From assembly GCA_021613535.1 (NCBI GenBank), contig CP075497.1:4092001-4156000 (forward strand): 64,000 nucleotides of DNA, given 5' to 3'. Below the pieces are notes generated by a model. The model saw only the letters and a program-made list of their open reading frames with translations, was not told where the DNA came from and ran no database searches. The DNA is from Adineta vaga. Lineage: Eukaryota; Animalia; Rotifera. A program made the position numbers and the translations under genes. Below, in pieces: positions 26,761-37,721 of the stretch. How positions within the stretch are numbered: the stretch's first letter is position 1; every line of letters begins with the position of its first letter.

Positions 26761-26837
26761 ATAAAAAGAATATGTGAATGTTTTTTTTTTCAAATTTCTG
26801 TGTCAAATAAAAATCTTTCAATCAAATAAATAGAAAA

Positions 26838-28608
26838 TTAGGCACGTTCACTCAATACTTCTCGATTTACAGCTGGTTGAATACGAAGACGTGGTTCAAC
26901 TTGTTTCCAATACGAATATTTATCAAGATTATTTATTGATTCAGCCAAATAAGTTCGAGCATCGACACGATATGGTGATATATCAATATTATCAGGTTCA
27001 AAACGACGAATTTTCAATAGATTTTCAAGAGCCTAATTAATAAAATATCATTAGGAGGTTTTTTCAAAAATAGTTTAACTTACTAAACATGCTCGTTCTT
27101 CATTAACATTTCCCCATACAAATAATTCCATTAAAGCTGAATTAAATTTAACGGCATCAGCAAGACTACATAATCCATCACCTTTGATATTATTCCAACG
27201 GATATCAAGACTAAAATTTAGCTATTTAATTTGAAATATTAGTCAGAACACGAAAACATTACCTTCGAAGTCTTGAATTTGAATGAAGTAATGCTGTTGC
27301 AATATGACCAGCACCTTCATCTTCTAATCGATTAAAAGCTAAATTAAGTCGTAGAAGACTACATTTTTCAAGCATAGGTGCTATATAAACAGCTCCATCA
27401 CGTGTAATTCGATTGCTAAAAATACAAATACATTTTTCTTCTTCTTCTTTTGATTCATCAATACTTTTAACATACCAACTAAGATCAAGAAAATATAATG
27501 TTTGATTATGTTGCATCTTTTGACATATCCACATAAATCCAATATCACGAATTTCATATTTTTGTATATGTAATTCTTGTAAAACGGTGTTTTTCTAAAA
27601 AGAAAAAAACAAATAGATTTCATTCATCGTTTATTTCCTTGAATAGATTATAAACTTCAAGCATTTGTGCAATATGAATCGCAATATCATCAACCCAATT
27701 TGTATGTTGATATTGTGGTACTGGACGACTTAAATCAACTGTTTTTAAACTTGGATTATAACGTAGAACAGTCAATAATGCAACTAAACTATTCATTTCC
27801 TAGTAAAAGTTTATATTGCATTAAATATTATCAATATGGATTAGAAAAACATACTAAATCACAATTTGCTAAATTTAAATGTTCAAGATTAATATTAATT
27901 TGAAGTGTTTCAGCCATTGCCATTCCACCTTCTTTACCAATATTATTATCAGCGAGTGAAAGAGATGATAGTGCTGTATTTGTCTATTTTATTAAATGAA
28001 AATAGGATGAAGATTTTCGATTTGAATTTCAAGTTTTACTTTGAGACTATTCGCTATACTCTGTGTACCTTTTCGATGAATATCATTTCCTTGTAAATTA
28101 AGAATGGATATATATTGATCATTCTAGATACGAAAAAGTTCAAAGATCATTCAATTAGCAAAGAAAATAATTGAATTTACGATAAGGAAATTTGCAAGTA
28201 GTCCAGCACCTTCATCTGAAATACGATTGTATCTAATAATAACATTTAAGAATATAAATATGTATTTCTTATTCGATATTTACCGAAGATCAAGATGAGT
28301 GATCATTGTAGCCGTTCTTAAAGCTTCAAAAATATGTGGAAGATCATTATCATGTATACGAAACTTGTTTAATGTTGGTTGATTTCCATTTAAAGGTAAA
28401 ATACGATCATAATTTCTTAGAAGAAAATCAAAAATGAATTAATCGCAATTCGAAATCAACATTTCTATATTTACTGATATGTTGATTCATCGATATAACG
28501 TAGTGATCGTTCACGAAGAGTGCTCAATGTTTCGACAATACCTTGATTAGGACGTTGTTTTGTTTTCGTTGATGCTTGTTCATAACTATGTTTCAATTCT
28601 TTGAGCAT
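26838..28608 (-). CDS. LRRC34: Leucine-rich repeat protein 34-like (RI-type LRR)
   Basis: Repeated LxLxxNxIxxxG motifs; C-terminal DISPYRVDARTYLAE...YSYW; ATG at 28608 after a splice acceptor. Confidence 0.75.
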
Positions 28609-28898
28609 GATTTGTCTGTAAGAGTTTGTTAATGAGTTTTTTTTCAAATGCTAAATGACTACCATTAACATTACGAATAGACATGACGATAAACCTCTTT
28701 GAATGGTGTTCTATGAAAAGAAAGATGTCGGTATAGAAGAAAATTTTGATTTGAGTATCAAAATTATACAATGAGCAGTTACAGTATATCATATTTCATT
28801 TTTGTATCGTGTTCGAGCACGAAATTCTTATCTTAAGATCTTTACTGTATCATTTGCTTTTCATTTAGAAAGTCTTTTAGATTCGTGATAAACGTACA

Positions 28899-29167
28899 AT
28901 GAGTACACAGAAAGTATTTAGTGTTACTGGTATGACATGTCAATCATGTATTAAGAACATAGAACGCAATGTAGGTAAAATTGATGGTGTGAAATCTGTT
29001 CAGGTAAGACGGATAATGAGTTGAATAAAAGAATGATTCATATTTTGTTCATGTAGGTTTCATTGGATGAAAAAGAAGCACGTGTTGAATTCGATAGTGG
29101 AAAAACAAGTGAACAAGCTGTTATTGAAAAGATCAATGGTTTAGGATTTCAAGCACAAGAAAAATAA
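28899..29167 (+). CDS. Stand-alone HMA-domain copper chaperone, 71 aa (CopZ/ATP7-MBD-like; functional ATOX1 analogue)
   Basis: Two exons (28899-29003, 29057-29167): MSTQKVFSVTGMTCQSCIKNIERNVGKIDGVKSVQ|VSLDEKEARVEFDSGKTSEQAVIEKINGLGFQAQEK*; missed by the ORF track. Confidence 0.9.
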
Positions 29168-30244
29168 TTTTGTGAATTTTATTCGATTGACTTCAATGCT
29201 TTTCTTTTTCGTGATATTGACATTTACTTTTCTTTTTCTTCTGTCTATTTATTATCATAAACAAGTTTGCATATTTGAAAATATCATACATTGATACTTG
29301 ATCGAAATGTTAGAAAACTACGGCGATTGTGTTTTGATGATTCAATATTTAATCATCTTGATTCATTTCAAATATTTGCGATCGATTTAATCGTGTATGT
29401 CATTTGATGGATGTGTTTCGTATCAAGCAGATCGACTACTTCCTTTTTATTTCTCACGTTTAGATTTTGGTAATAAATATTTATAGATTCAGTATGAATG
29501 AATCGAATTTATCCATACAATATTCTTCTATCATATCCAATCTGTTACTTCCAAAGAAGAATATGGGATGCACATCTGATATTCTGACAACGATGACAAA
29601 ATTTACTAATCATATCTGCACATGTGAGAATGTCTATTCTTTGAAGAAAACCAACATTAAATCTACAAAATCTGTTCAATTCTCGTATGATAACATGGGA
29701 TATGGATAAATTATGCAATTGAATTCAAATATGAACACATTTAAAATAACACGTTTTATATACGTAATTTTCAATTTTAGACATCAATGATAAGAATCAA
29801 ATGCTTCGAAAGTTTTTTCATGTATATTGATGATGCTAATCTTAAACTACGATCATTATTGAATGTCAATATCGATTATATGAAGATAAAATGACATGAA
29901 GTTATTCGTAATCATAAGTATTTAGATGAACATTCATATACTATCTTTTTTATCAATGAAAAAGTCAAATTTATCGTTTGTTTACAAAGATAGATGTTCA
30001 TGGAAATTCTAAGCTGAAAAATGTCGTTTTAAACATTTAGATTATTAAAGTAAAGTGACAAAATGTAATTTTATTATTCTAAAACTACAACTATTTTATT
30101 TTTCATCAATATTGTTCAGTAAATAAGATAATCTCGATGTTTCTCTTGTACTGTTCGAGTTTAAATACAACTTAATATGTATACTTGCTACTGAATGACC
30201 ATGTATAATTGCAAAGATACATTATAAACAAAAAATGTGTACTT

Positions 30245-31040
30245 CTATGAACGACGATTTCTTTGAGTAGGTGGATTTACACGACTCCATGTAAATAACA
30301 AATGTCCAACACCAGTACCGAATATAATAGCAAAAAATAGATAAACATTAAATGTCATTGCGATGAGCATTAGACTATAACCAAGTGCTAAATTAATAAT
30401 ATAAAAAATACTTGATATTATTCGTTCGGAATAGGGCGAAGAAGTTCTTTGAAAAAGAAGAATAAGAATAAGCAATTTTTAATTAAATTGTCTGAAAGAT
30501 GATTTAGTTTACTTGTTTCTATTGGGAATTGTTGATGGAAGAGATTCAATATTCATACGTGCTAATTCATTTTCAATAGCATCATCTGAAAATCTAAAAT
30601 CAATAATTGAAAATATGATGAAGGGGTTAATTCATTTTAAACTGACATCGGTTGTTTTGTAAGTCGTTCTTCTTCGGCAAAACGATGAAATTCTTTAATG
30701 CCTTCATATAAAATACCCATTATGAATATAAATATCCATGAGATAACAAAAACTATTTAGAAAAACAAAAAATTAAAATATATGTAATAAATACACTATA
30801 AACAACTCTACTTGGAATAGAAATGGTCTCCCATGGTTCAAATAGAATTGTTTCAACAAAGCCTCCATGAAAAAACATCTAAATAGCACAGATATGTGTT
30901 CTCAGATGGAAAGATACTATGTATTGTAACTTTACCTTTGACATTGAATGATGATCATGTGTTGATGCCATTGCTTTTATTGATGATGTATTAAAATGAC
31001 CATGCATATGATTTGAACTATGAACGTGATGATTATTCAT
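30245..31040 (-). CDS. SLC31A1: Ctr-family copper importer
   Basis: His/Met-rich N-terminus MNNHHVHSSNHMHGH, MFFHGG..ETILFEPW, ILYEGIK, GYSLMLIAMTFN (MxxxM) and GTGVG (GxxxG); 5 exons in frame. Confidence 0.9.
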
Positions 31041-31568
31041 ATTTCTTTTCTTCTCAGTTATAAGTAGGTATGAAAAACGTGTATGTATTCGTCAATATTT
31101 TAAGTTTGCGGTGAAGAGATAGAGAATGAAGCACTTCAAAAATATGCATTTTACACTACATACACGGTCAGTATAAAGGAAAGAAAGAAAGAAAGAAAGA
31201 ATGGATTGTGTATATTTGCATAAGAACTAACGTCTACTTATCACAATAGAATATGGTCGACTTTTATACCACTTTATGATTCTTTATTTTATCGGTCCCA
31301 TTTAGTATTGTTGTATATGCCACTTGAAATAACGAAAATAAAAATGAAAAAGATCGATACTGTTTGTGTTGATTATACATGAAACACTCGCACCCACACC
31401 CCACACCCTAATGAAAAGCGAAGTGAATCAAACTGGGAAATATTATTTATGTAATAAAGTTATATATAAATTAAAATAAAAACAAATAGTTGATTGTATT
31501 TTATTTGGTATCCTTACAAAAATATCACGCTTAAAAATATATGAATCGTTCAATATTTATTTGAACAT

Positions 31569-34500
31569 TTACAATGCAGTTATTTGCAATTCCATTTCTT
31601 CTTCTTTATGTTGATTGAGTGATCGTTCATCACTAAAGAATACAGTCGCTTTTCGTTTTTCATCCATAACAGCATTTTTTATTGCTGATATTGATTCCGT
31701 TACAATTTGTGATAATAGACTATTTTTAATACTTGAAATAATACTTGTTGCTTTAGATCGATGAATTGGTAAATTATCAATACCACGATGAACAACAATC
31801 CCAACTGATTTATTCAATGACCATTGACGATATCGACTGTCTCGTTCAAATTTCTCCATAGTTGGCTTTTTGAAATAACGTAAAAGTAGTGAAGAAACAA
31901 CGACACTAACAGATGACAATGCCATAGCAGCGGATGCCATCCAGGGCATAAGTTGAACACCAGCAGGTAGAAGAACACCTGAAAAAAGTGAAGTATAAAG
32001 GACTTTTTTTTTCAAACAAAATGATTTATCAAATTGACATACCAGCAGCAATGGGTATGCCGACTAAATTATATACAGTAGCAAATATAAAATTAATTCG
32101 TATACGCCATACAGTCTTTTTTGAAAGCATTATTGCAGCTAGAACATCAAATAATTCATCACGAATCAATACAATAGATGCTGCTTCGACAGCTACATCT
32201 GCACCCGTACCAACAGCAATTCCAACATCAGCACGTGCTAATGCTGGAGAATCATTAATTCCATCTCCGACCATGGCTATTTTCCCACGAGATTTTCCAT
32301 CTTGTTTTAAATTAGCAATAAAACGTTCTTTGTGTGTTGGTAAAACTTCTGCAAAAACTGTTTTAATACCAACTTGACTAGCAATTGCACGTGCTGTTTT
32401 AACATTATCACCTGTTAATAAAATTGTACGTAAACCAAGTGATTGTAATGCATAGATTGTTAACGAAGCAGTTGGTTTAACTTCATCAGCAATAGCTAAC
32501 ATACCTACGATTTTACCTATAAATAAAACATTCTTATAGATCTGTTAACTATCATATAATTGAAATTTTTACCATCAATAGCTACTAAAACTGCCGTATG
32601 ACCATCATGTTCATGAACAGACATTGTTTTATCAATTCCATCATCTACCATTAAATGATTACATTTCATCCATTCTCGATTACCAATAAGAACTGAATAT
32701 GTACGAGATGATTCTTCCGTAGTACTCGCTACTAAACAATTAATATGACTAACACGTGCTTGAAGACCATAGCCCCATAGTGCTTTAAAATCACGACAAA
32801 GACCCAATTGATCAGTACCAAAATGTTCTTTACAATGATTACGTACAGCTAAAGCTAATGGATGTTCCGAACCACTTTCCGCTGTTCCTACAAAAGTAAT
32901 CAAAGCGATCAATCGATGATTATATTCGTAATTCTTATTTACCCGCAATGGCTAACATTCGATCAAGAGTCATATGTGAATTTTGAACAAAGATTCTTTT
33001 ATCAACAACAGATGGTTTGCCTTTTGTTATTGTACCGGTTTTATCAAATACAATTGTATCAATTTTATGAGCAGATTCTAAAGGTTCTCCGCCTTTAATA
33101 AGAATACCATTCGATGCGCCGCACCTAAAAGATCAATTATGTAATTATATTTCTATTTTATTCTATTTTTCTCTCAGAAACCTGTGCCAACCATAACAGC
33201 AGTTGGTGTTGCTAAACCTAATGCGCATGGACAAGCAATTGATAGAACAGTAATTGCATAACGAAAAGCAAGCTCAAGAACAATTTCAGCTTTGGAAGCA
33301 TCGTATGTATTCGTTGAATGTCCATCACCATGTGAACTCTCATCCATTGTATGATAATACTAAATAAGAATTCCATTAGAGAACAACTCAATTTGAAACT
33401 TACTGATGAATATTTTTTAAGTGTATCAAAGATTGTAAAACCCAAAATGATATAGATAATCAATGTCAACAATGAAATTGAAACAACGAATGGTACAAAA
33501 TAACCAGCAACTTTATCAGCTAATTGTTGAATTGGTGCTTTCGATGTTTGAGCATCTTCTACTAAACGAATGATTTGTTTTAATGCTGTGTCTTGTCCAA
33601 CATGTGTTGCACGCATGATAATTAAACCATCGAGATTTTTTGTACCACCAACAATTTGTGCACCAATAGTTTTATCGATAGGCATAGATTCTCCTGTAAT
33701 CAAAGATTCATCACACGTTGTTGTACCATCAATAATTCGACCATCTGTTGGAATGGTTTCACCAGGTTGAACTTTTAGTAGATCGTCACGTTGAATTAAT
33801 TGAGCAAGAACAACTTTTTCTTCGATAATTTTTCCTGTTTCATCTAATTTAACCAATGTACCTTGCGGTGGTTGAAGTGACAATAATTTTTTTAATGCAT
33901 CTGACGTTTTTGCCTTAATTAAAATACATGATTTATTTTCAATATCTTCGATAGTTTATTATTACTTTAGCAGAATGTTCAAGCCATCGTCCCAAAGCAA
34001 CAAACATGAAAAGCACTGAAAAATGAAGATTAAATATATAAAAAGATTAGATTAGATATGTAAGTTTACTTGGTGATACATCAAAAAATGCCATTGGACT
34101 TGGTATTCTCATGATCATATTTATAATAACTACTACAATAGAATAAACATAAGCTACAGTTGTTGCTAATACAATAAGAACTTCCATATTTGCTGATTTA
34201 TGTTTTAATGATTTGTAAGCTTGAACATAAAAATATCGACCACTGATGATCTATGAAATAGAAATATCAATGATCAAATAGATTCTCCAACAATATTTGT
34301 ACGTACTTGAACAGGTGTAGCTAATAGGAACATGATTAAATTTTCAACTGATAAACCAGTAGTAACATGAGGTGCTTTTCGATGATCTTTGTATTTAAAC
34401 ATAAAAACAAGCATAATAATCATTGCTGGTATACCAAAAATAGCAGCAGTAATAAATGAATTTCGCCATCTATGAAGATTAACAAAAAATAATTCGATAA

Positions 34501-35947
34501 TATTTTCTGTTGATACACTTACTGTGTTGTGATACGTCGATGTGAACGAGCTAAATCTTCCGATTTTAAATTTTCCGTTATTACTGTTGCTCGATAACCG
34601 AGATCTTCCTATAGAAAGAAAAGAAAACAATATGATATCTGAATGTATTTAATGAGAGAAATAGATTACTGATATATGTTTAAGAATATCTCGAGGTCCA
34701 ATAATACTCGAATCATATTGAATTCGTCCACGATTAGTTAATAATACTACGTTCACTGATGTAATGCCCGGAATTTTACTCATATGATTTTGAATTTTAT
34801 CTACACATGATGAACATGTCATATTTTCAATCTACAAAGAGAAAAGTTCAAATTTTTTCCTTTTTTACTTCGTAAATCATTGATCTTACATTCACATCGA
34901 TGATTTCCATTCCACGTGCAACAGTGTCAAGTACTTCCGCTTGAAAACCAAGATTATTGATTAAAGTAGCAATTTGTGTTGGTAAAAGATGAGCTGAATC
35001 ATATTTAACTTCTGCACGTTGTGCTAAGAGAGCAACTAACACGGAATGAATACCTATTTCAACAAATATACGTATTTTGTTGTAAATTTACACATGTTAT
35101 CCAAAACAATTAATTACCTTCAACTTTGCCTAAATTTCTTTGTATACTATCAACACATGATGCACATGTCATTCCAAGAACAGTAAAATAACATGTTTCT
35201 AAATCGGTTTCATTATCTGGTTTAGACACTGGAGCTTGTCTACTTGATCTTTGAGTTATTTTTGTTTGTTGAAATTTAATTTCATCGTTAATAGCTAGAA
35301 GAAGGAAAAAAACAATATTCATAAGTCAGTTATCAATATAATCATAAGACTTACATCTAATACTTGTCCTACGGATTGAATTTTCTGTATTTGACGTTAC
35401 TAGAATATAAATGTTCCTCTTATGAAAGAATCTCTCTGTCGAAAAACATACCTTGAATATCCTCATTTGTTGCAATAACTTGTTCAGTATTTGAAATAGC
35501 AACTTGAAAACTAAGTTTTTCAATTTCATCAATAATATCATTCAATTGAAGAATTGAAGGATCATATGTGATCGTTGCAAGTTTATCCAAGAATGTCAAT
35601 TGAATATCAATAACACCGGGTAAATCAAGTACTGAACCACAAATATTTGAAACACATGAATTACAATGCATTCCTTCAATACGTAATTGACATTGAACTG
35701 ATTGAGAATTGGTTAATTGTACAGGATGACCTAAACGTTGAATTGCCGTTAGAAGTCCATATTGATCGAGTATAGTTTTATCATAAGAAAGTTCAACTTG
35801 ATTATTATCATCAATAAATTTACAGGATAGAAGACCATCAATCCGTTCACAAAGTCTTTCACATATATAGTCATGATTTGATTCATGAACTCCTCCTAGA
35901 AATATTTGAATTTGTAAAGGTTCTGTTGTCGTTATCGGTGCATGCAT
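31569..35947 (-). CDS. ATP7: Copper-transporting P1B-ATPase; apparent 1-nt frameshift at 33121-33122
   Basis: MBDs GMHCNSC, GMTCASC, NMTCSSC; [45 protein letters not shown]. Confidence 0.95.
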
Positions 35948-36605: not shown

Positions 36606-37721
36606 TTAACAATCAATTGTCATCATTGCTGTTATGTTATGACGTAACTGAATAACTTTCCATGCTTTTCGATATTCATTATATTTCTGTTCGAGTGTAC
36701 GACTGAAACCAATATGAAATGTTGTTGAACATACAGTTAAAACAGGATTACTTGCCATTAAACATGAACAATTACCGAAAGGTGATTGTTCATACAGAAG
36801 TGGAATAGTTGTACATCTGACTTTAGCTGCTTTTGCTAAGAATCCCGATGCAAATACATCACCAATCCATACAACTTTATGTAATGGATAAGTATTCGCT
36901 GCATGAACAAGTTTATCACGAACATAATTCGACATAAACCAACCAAAACCTGAACAATACGGCGGAAGAAATGTATGCGGCCAAATCGTTTCATTAACAC
37001 CAAATTTTCCATTTCCACGTCCTGTTATTTGATATTCAATAGCCCATCCTCCACGAAAAAATGTTGTTCGATCCGACGATAAAAGACTTGACATAAGTAG
37101 AGGATCATATTTTAAAATATAAGACTCAGTTTTTGTAGTATTACTCACAAGTAATCTAGCCATGAACGATATTAACATTGTATCAACAATAAGATCATCA
37201 TCTGTTTTAAATAAATATGAAATATTTGGATAAAATCGATGTGACCATTGTAAAGCAGCTACTTCTTTATAAACAACATTTGCATATGTTTCAATATGAT
37301 TTATTTCAATGATATCACGATATTGTCTTCGTTCATTATTTACTTTCATTTGAAGTTCACCAGCATCGACTGTTGTACCGGATATTTCACCAATAATAAA
37401 TACAAAACAAGTTCCATTCTGTTTCGATGCCCATGTTGAACGAATTATTTCACGTCGTTGAAAATTATTTATCGATGATAAAATATAAACAAGTAGAATA
37501 TCATTCGATTGACATATCGCTTGATTTGATGTTAAATCGATATTTACACGAAAATATACTACAGGAGAATTATCAAAACTTGTTGCAATATCCAATAAGT
37601 TCGATGGTAAATTTTCAGTCAATTGACTACTATCAAACGTGATATATAAAGCAATTAGCAGTAAAACTATTAATGTGATACAGTATAAATTTAATGAACG
37701 ATACTTTCGAAATAACCACAT
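36606..37721 (-). CDS. GT31 beta-1,3-galactosyltransferase-like glycosyltransferase
   Basis: Type II TM anchor, RREIIRSTWA, ETYANVVYK, LFKTDDD, PPYCSGFG, WIGDVFASG. Confidence 0.88.
   Translation of the reverse strand: MWLFRKYRSLNLYCITLIVLLLIALYITFDSSQLTENLPSNLLDIATSFDNSPVVYFRVNIDLTSNQAICQSNDILLVYILSSINNFQRREIIRSTWASKQNGTCFVFIIGEISGTTVDAGELQMKVNNERRQYRDIIEINHIETYANVVYKEVAALQWSHRFYPNISYLFKTDDDLIVDTMLISFMARLLVSNTTKTESYILKYDPLLMSSLLSSDRTTFFRGGWAIEYQITGRGNGKFGVNETIWPHTFLPPYCSGFGWFMSNYVRDKLVHAANTYPLHKVVWIGDVFASGFLAKAAKVRCTTIPLLYEQSPFGNCSCLMASNPVLTVCSTTFHIGFSRTLEQKYNEYRKAWKVIQLRHNITAMMTIDC

Follow-up and report, generated by a model that had tools for sequence, protein, structure and literature searches.

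The copper genes of the window

Three adjacent genes of copper handling lie at positions 28899-35947 of a 64,000-nucleotide stretch of the genome of the bdelloid rotifer Adineta vaga, namely C6:4092001-4156000 in the 100.8-Mb assembly of six contigs, to which we refer as the window. They encode a 71-aa HMA protein on the forward strand (hereafter the chaperone) and, on the reverse strand, a Ctr importer and an ATP7-type Cu-ATPase. A preliminary description of this DNA had read them as three adjacent genes, and all three are real, spliced and expressed; the gap between ATP7 and Ctr, which it put at about 530 bp, measures 528 bp from the ATP7 stop codon (31571-31569) to the Ctr ATG (31040). The region has a GC content of ~30% and introns of ~50-65 nt. 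Transcription was followed in RNA contigs from four runs (X1, X5, X12 and X13, from four studies), aligned to 28850-34849. These contigs skip every predicted intron, with GT..AG ends, and therefore the four runs contain RNA. The exon structure of ATP7 5' of 34849 is a by-eye reading. Ctr and ATP7 were delineated by exon-by-exon profile searches in which the exons were not joined, and for the whole chaperone the database record P0158 was used. The coordinates of the features are collected in Table 1.

The chaperone is 100% identical to the annotated A. vaga protein I4U23_028535 (P0158), of 71 aa. It consists of a single HMA domain of ~70 aa with a GMTCQSC motif, as is typical of the HMA metallochaperone family, and passes TIGR00003 with 73.4 bits (cut-off 62). 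Its scores lie below the cut-offs of the CopZ equivalog models (NF033795, 65.4 bits against 91; NF033794, 65.0 bits against 95). At E<=0.01 its relatives in the PDB are 46 sequences comprising domains of ATP7A/B and CopA, CopZ, MerP and other HMA chains; ATOX1 or Atx1 is not amongst them, and the chaperone carries MTCQSC instead of the MxCxGC of the ATOX1/Atx1 family. The view of a canonical ATOX1-type chaperone is therefore not supported. An ATOX1-like exon was not found in the assembly in two limited searches, a six-frame HMA scan and an MTCxGC pattern search, both made without a bona fide ATOX1 query. The pattern has four matches in the genome, which were rejected as ATOX1, none of them being HMA-like. 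A search of the literature on rotifer copper chaperones found nothing relevant.

The HMA survey, a six-frame scan of the whole A. vaga genome, returned four kinds of place: the ATP7 of the window, the other ATP7 of the genome (C3:9.137 Mb), the chaperone and a MerTP-like pair on C2/C5. Searches for free homologues of the chaperone yielded DNA of the Adineta clade only (A. ricciae, A. steineri, several contigs from metagenomes and a contig labelled Rotaria sordida). Across these homologues the ratio of nonsynonymous to synonymous divergence (dN/dS) is ~0.1, ranging from 0.02 to 0.30, at dS values from 0.2 to >2, which is saturation. Therefore, the free domain is an old and constrained gene under strong purifying selection.

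The importer shows the features of the Ctr/SLC31 family: a His/Met-rich N-terminus (MNNHHVHSSNHMHGH...), MLIAM (MxxxM) in the second transmembrane segment, GTGVG (GxxxG) in the third, and a match of its last exon to Pfam Ctr (PF04145) at 57.8 bits (cut-off 25.3). All four of its introns are backed by CT..AC joints in the four RNA runs. The A. vaga genome holds ~7 Ctr loci; the closest paralogue of the window Ctr is on C4, and the surroundings of another locus, at C3:16.22-16.28 Mb, show no synteny with the window.

The ATPase of the window, paralogue A (ATP7-A), has exons matching E1-E2_ATPase (PF00122), Hydrolase (PF00702) and TIGR01511/TIGR01525. The motifs CPC, DKTGT, SEHPL, TGES and GDGINDSP can be read from it and identify it as a P1B-1 Cu(I)-ATPase. 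Its N-terminal HMA region consists of three metal-binding domains (MBDs) with CxxC and one degenerate MBD, and eleven introns, between 31976 and 34669, are backed by RNA. Orthologues are annotated in A. ricciae (1214 aa) and A. steineri (1208 aa). At 33121/33122 (GTGCGGC) the frame is one base short and, as assembled, hits a stop thereafter. RNA contigs of X1, X12 and X13 have an extra T at this point (GTGTCGGC), and A. ricciae, A. steineri and the metagenome sequence L029 are in frame at the site (G-V/I-G-A-S-N-G). The discrepancy is either an assembly error or one frameshifted haplotype.

Table 1. Features at and around the copper genes, in window coordinates.
Feature	Position	Strand	Remarks
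LRR (tropomodulin/leiomodin-type) gene	26823..28617	-	Pfam families of the genes listed for A. ricciae and A. steineri; synteny
Chaperone exon 1, MSTQKVFSVTGMTCQSCIKNIERNVGKIDGVKSVQ	28899..29003	+	Pfam HMA (PF00403), 35.6 bits on exon 1 alone; splice in four RNA runs
Chaperone intron, phase 0, 53 nt, after ..SVQ	29004..29056	+	GT..AG joint in X1, X5, X12, X13
Chaperone exon 2 with stop, VSLDEK...GFQAQEK	29057..29167	+	
Chaperone 3' untranslated region (UTR) or weakly transcribed tail	29168..29951	+	RNA contigs colinear to 29457 (X1) and 29951 (X5)
Ctr (SLC31-type), 186 codons, five exons	30245..31040	-	Exons 31040-30936, 30878-30812, 30752-30647, 30593-30513, 30446-30245
ATP7-Ctr spacer	31170..31568	-	(CTTTC)n repeat at 31170-31213; AATAAA directly behind the ATP7 stop
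ATP7-type P1B Cu(I)-ATPase, paralogue A	31569..35947	-	Begins at the degenerate MBD, without MBD1
DKTGT phosphorylation motif	33031..33045	-	Motif reading
One-base frame discrepancy, start of the exon after intron 33125-33181	33121..33124	-	Window ag/GTGCGGCGCA, RNA GTGTCGGCGCA
CPC transmembrane copper site	33225..33233	-	Motif reading
GMTCASC MBD (intron splits it after ..VEG) and NMTCSSC MBD	34658..35187	-	
Degenerate Cys-less MBD, then GMHCNSC MBD	35504..35890	-	Aligns with LDLELGGISDENIP... and GMHCNSC of the C3 paralogue
Galactosyltransferase (GalT) gene, upstream of ATP7	36606..37721	-	Flank marker for synteny

The free domain and MBD1 of the C3 paralogue

The second ATP7 of A. vaga, the C3 paralogue (ATP7-B), has five N-terminal HMA units, namely MBD1 (GMTCQSC), a degenerate MBD2 and three more. 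Its exon 1 reads MEELTQYIHIDGMTCQSC..SIQ and is followed by an intron. The second exon is one open frame, VSLENK..GFNAELNQITNSNNLDLELGG../..GFNAELNQITNSNNLDLELGGISDENIP.., which runs into the degenerate MBD2 and the GMHCNSC MBD3. The intron of MBD1 lies at the same codon and in the same phase as that of the chaperone (..SIQ/VSL.. on C3, ..SVQ/VSL.. in the window), and the remaining MBDs have an intron elsewhere or none. The chaperone stops two codons past GFQAQ, whereas in the C3 paralogue GFQAQ continues into the linker and MBD2. ATP7-A starts ~ten codons ahead of its degenerate MBD, just past where an MBD1 would end, and no HMA exon lies upstream of it within the window. The chaperone and the C3 MBD1 share 27/61 residues (44%), which is close to the identity between copies A and B in the GMHCNSC MBD (44%); with the MBD1 of a further B-type sequence, L056, the chaperone shares 28/66.

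The homology of the chaperone to ATP7 MBD1 is thus well supported, and the preliminary description, which had spoken of non-homologous genes, has to be corrected on this point: the same domain is fused to the pump on C3, with its intron in the same place. Since MBD1 and pump are fused in the C3 paralogue and the cut falls in the linker between MBD1 and MBD2, the chaperone and the ATP7 of the window can be read as halves of one gene, and two of the three neighbours would therefore most simply be neighbours by descent.

Homologues were sought with HMMER amongst 1.8 billion representatives, using the ATP7 N-terminus as the query. A fused MBD1 is present in the rotifer B-type open reading frames (ORFs) P0033, P0090, P0098, P0100 and P0101, and in L056 too, and the A-type ORFs P0002, P0005, P0008, P0018, P0020 and P0023 start at the degenerate MBD. 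The long representatives included no full-length rotifer ATP7; they came from fungi and vertebrates instead. One A-type sequence from outside Adineta, L034 (P0024), carries a further N-terminal exon without cysteines, which an intron joins to the rest and which we count in favour of the fission proposed below; this N-terminus is faintly HMA-like, with an E of 0.026 in one pairwise comparison and no Pfam match. In A. vaga, as in another taxon, the B-type ATP7 and Vps41 are arranged head to head.

Transcription and synteny of the trio

The trio had been called operon-like. This finds no support in the RNA, in which each gene has separate contigs in all four data sets and the spacer at 31250-31449 has a depth of zero in every run, or in the orientation of the chaperone, which lies on the opposite strand. 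The chaperone mRNA is spliced and reads past the stop codon into its own 3' UTR, and the Ctr RNA spans ~30052-31169. No contig in the four runs bridges two genes of the trio, although contigs cannot exclude a rare or short-lived precursor and do not mark the ends of transcripts. The chaperone is oriented head to head with the LRR gene and tail to tail with Ctr, and from the gene orientations the layout of a shared or bidirectional promoter is absent within the trio. As far as contigs can tell, these are three separately transcribed genes and not an operon.

Some details of the transcripts are recorded here. The ATP7 contigs stop at exactly 31594 in all four runs, 23 nt before the stop codon, and leave 31450-31593 uncovered; an allelic difference that broke the assembly graph may account for this end. 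As to a spliced leader on Ctr, no loose contig ends were reported at the 5' end of the gene, and the contigs are cut at the (CTTTC)n-type repeat immediately upstream of the most 5' RNA cover of Ctr. The earlier statement that nothing lies between the three genes stands in so far as the A. ricciae and A. steineri records have no annotated intervening gene, but has to be qualified for 29434-29855, which is weakly transcribed and partly conserved. This interval has separate RNA contigs of low depth, and within it a tblastx block at 29608-29742 matches A. ricciae and metagenome Adineta contigs. Candidate explanations are a long isoform of the 3' UTR, a conserved element within the UTR and a small gene that lacks annotation.

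The order LRR, chaperone (+), Ctr (-), ATP7 (-), GalT is common to the window, A. ricciae (L035), A. steineri (L058) and L059. Three Adineta-like lineages possess chaperone and Ctr and have no ATP7 at this place, with both flanks kept once (L039). The contigs L039/L041 read LRR, chaperone, Ctr, two GalT genes, a flavoprotein gene and RPS26, and L036 and L042 run from TGS1..UBA3..LRR through chaperone and Ctr into a shared unrelated sequence. Absence of the linkage amidst conserved gene order was one half of the outcome that the preliminary description had named as speaking against a cluster, and it is seen in L039, in which the flanks are kept; ATP7 is missing from L036 and L042 too, and the three named Adineta species have the trio. 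The trio is retained only where the whole block is, and linkage beyond the surrounding synteny, or across distant relatives, as would mark a conserved cluster, was not found. The adjacency of chaperone and Ctr is retained in 7/7 sequences of the Adineta clade, as is the whole surrounding block. Because this block is equally conserved, the adjacency of Ctr carries no extra weight, and its position is lineage-specific synteny within Adineta.

The 8-kb contig L059 (GCA_905250005.1, CAJNOH010005566.1), which carries chaperone, Ctr and ATP7, is labelled Rotaria sordida. It is closest to A. steineri (chaperone dS 0.22; 85% DNA identity in ATP7) and is probably Adineta DNA inside a Rotaria assembly. 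In A. vaga itself, the ohnologous block on C3 is collinear with the window over ~60 kb and, in the comparison with L052 (C3:11.495-11.505 Mb), lacks the 17-kb part of the window from 19.2 to 36.6 kb, which holds TGS1, a syntaxin-like gene, UBA3, LRR and the trio. GalT is present in two tandem copies on this C3 block and on the metagenome contig L039.

No Ctr gene lies within ~20 kb of ATP7-B on C3. Likewise, neither Ctr nor a chaperone was found near the A-type ATP7 of another bdelloid (L029-L033), within 10 kb upstream and 6.7 kb downstream, and the flanks of L029 and L034 are syntenic with neither the window nor the C3 block. In L029-L033, which come from activated sludge and bioreactor metagenomes, ATP7-A stands amongst TPR, AIG1-like and ART/TPR genes of large, fast-evolving families and looks inserted between two genes; the best matches of these in A. 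vaga are neighbours at C4:9.478-9.483 Mb.

Origin of the arrangement and known parallels

We propose that the trio is not an operon but the in-situ relic of a gene fission of ATP7-A, of which the chaperone is the freed MBD1, and we give this explanation as a whole a probability of roughly 0.58. According to this model, the bdelloid ATP7 would have been duplicated, with copy B on C3 keeping all five N-terminal HMA units. In the Adineta lineage, a break in the short MBD1-MBD2 linker would have divided copy A. MBD1 would have retained its intron, gained a stop two codons past GFQAQ and so become a free, CopZ-like protein of 71 aa, and the rest of ATP7-A would have gained a new ATG ~ten codons ahead of MBD2. 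The simplest route to the present order of chaperone (+), Ctr (-) and ATP7 (-) would be one inversion of the segment holding the ATP7 body and Ctr. By analogy with CopZ, ATOX1 and CopA(Z) of E. coli, the free domain would most likely bind Cu(I) at its CxxC and hand it to the remaining MBDs of ATP7 or to the entry platform. The homology, the common intron, splicing and expression, purifying selection and the pattern of synteny are observed, and the direction of the event (a fission, in situ), the inversion and the hand-over of copper we infer.

Several observations weigh against a fission in situ and against this direction of the event. The chaperone is 42% identical to the GMTCASC MBD, nearly equal to the 44% shared with MBD1, and for this reason its assignment to MBD1 depends for the most part on a single common intron and on where the domain lies. 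The extra domain of L034, which is faintly HMA-like, lacks the intron of the chaperone. In an unrooted tree from coding sequence only, a branch (96/96) separates the four ATP7-bearing taxa from the others, and midpoint rooting makes them look derived; an arrival of ATP7 beside chaperone and Ctr, instead of its loss in the other lineages, would be consistent with this. Furthermore, the window is collinear with C3:11.465-11.515 Mb, and the neighbours of ATP7-B (C3:9.126 and 9.149 Mb) match C6:6.995 and 7.017 Mb, a comparison by coordinates only. Copies A and B thus lie outside collinear ohnologous blocks, and therefore ATP7-A has moved at least once.

Such mobility is part of a different explanation, a selected copper cluster, which is the inference of the preliminary description taken at its strongest and which we regard as unlikely. 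In the common ancestor of A. vaga, A. ricciae and A. steineri, an ATP7-A already devoid of MBD1 would have moved in between Ctr and GalT, and the trio would have been kept since uptake, carriage and export are co-ordinated through chromatin or enhancers that the genes share. The retention of the trio in the three named species and L059, the fit of a single gain to the derived position of the ATP7-bearing taxa under midpoint rooting, and the differing neighbours of ATP7-A in L029, L034 and L055 are consistent with such a move. The prior chance of a Ctr gene beside a copper HMA gene is also low, at ~1e-3, a rough estimate from the ~7 Ctr loci and about 30,000 genes in A. vaga. However, the conservation of the trio does not exceed that of its neighbours, the block from TGS1-UBA3-LRR to GalT-RPS26 being equally conserved, and there is neither a shared or bidirectional promoter nor bridging RNA. 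A chance landing of ATP7 one gene away from its former domain is improbable unless it never left. Counting the breakpoint of L036/L042, gain of ATP7 at the site is not cheaper than loss, as both need two events, and the adjacency was selected post hoc from many windows. A wider version, which is again unlikely and slightly more so, holds that Adineta, perhaps bdelloids in general, has no ATOX1 and uses the split-off MBD1 as its chaperone, and that selection brought or held the trio together as a co-regulated copper module. If true, this would make the trio one of the rare cases in which an animal has the genes of a pathway in a functional cluster.

The chaperone may instead have arisen by partial duplication of ATP7-B, from whose 5' end (exon 1 and part of exon 2) a copy landed beside Ctr, with ATP7-A having lost its MBD1 independently and the adjacency being a coincidence. 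The intron common to the chaperone and the B-type MBD1 suits this origin, as does the extra domain of the A-type L034, which has neither that intron nor cysteines. We nevertheless consider it a poor candidate. The chaperone is no closer to the A. vaga B-MBD1 than to that of L056, and it therefore split off before those taxa did; its divergence from B is similar to that between A and B in a neighbouring MBD, and it lies one gene away from an ATP7-A whose new start sits exactly at the point at which an MBD1 would finish. The reverse order of events, in which a free CopZ-like gene is the older form, possibly acquired from bacteria, and was later fused onto ATP7 in the B lineage, appears very improbable. 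The match to the NCBIfam CopZ models at 65 bits, the large amount of foreign DNA in bdelloids and the MerTP-like gene of bacterial type in this genome speak for it. Opposed to them are the spliceosomal intron of the chaperone, scores that stay below the CopZ equivalog cut-offs of 91-95 bits, and best solved relatives that are domains of animal ATP7A/B. In addition, free homologues were found in DNA of the Adineta clade only, whereas several divergent B-type sequences have the fused MBD1, and N-termini with several MBDs are the rule in animal ATP7.

The proposed fission of ATP7-A has parallels in known systems. Metallochaperones have the same fold as the metal-binding domains of copper pumps, and the conversion of one into the other has so far been argued mostly from distant comparisons. 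Under the 'Rosetta-stone' principle, a domain that is fused in one gene and free in another points to a functional link between the free parts. The A. vaga genes conform to this, being fused in ATP7-B and free as chaperone and ATP7-A, but unlike the usual pairs both states coexist as paralogues in one genome. The nearest precedent is CopA(Z) of E. coli, in which the first metal-binding domain of CopA is reported to be made as a separate chaperone, via programmed ribosomal frameshifting (Meydan et al. 2017, Drees et al. 2017, in PMC10187127). As in that account, the first MBD of a P1B copper pump exists in Adineta as a free CopZ-like protein beside the pump. Measured against the same account, the split in Adineta is genomic and not translational, involves two genes on opposite strands with Ctr between them, occurs in an animal, and leaves a pump that itself lacks the domain.

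With the bacterial copZ-copA operons the locus has in common a GMxCxxC HMA protein of ~70 aa that passes TIGR00003 and is encoded near a CPC-type P1B ATPase. Unlike these operons, the Adineta genes are not co-transcribed, and the chaperone has an intron, scores under the CopZ equivalog cut-offs and, on our reading, derives from an animal ATP7 domain. The Adineta importer gene, moreover, lies between chaperone and pump, and to our knowledge bacteria do not pair an importer with copZA. The route of animals from CTR1 through ATOX1 to ATP7A/B is plausibly covered in all three roles, and Ctr and ATP7 are ordinary members of their families, whereas the carrier is not of the ATOX1 type, having MTCQSC instead of MxCxGC.

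A. vaga thus holds the fused and the free state as paralogues in one genome, a natural experiment on whether a pump without MBD1 depends on MBD1 supplied in trans, in the manner of E. coli CopA(Z). The neighbourhood of the locus looks mostly the product of history, and it serves as a warning that the adjacency of pathway genes in a compact animal genome need not mean operon-like organisation.

The MerTP-like pair returned by the HMA survey lies at C2:9.974 Mb (L013 1174-1701) and C5:8.910 Mb. It is represented by an ORF of 175 aa with N-terminal membrane segments containing a CC pair and a C-terminal HMA domain with GMHCEGC. Its matches to bacterial MerTP fusion and MerT models are weak (53.5 and 31 bits, under the cut-offs), and it is possibly a metal transporter of foreign origin in two ohnologous copies.

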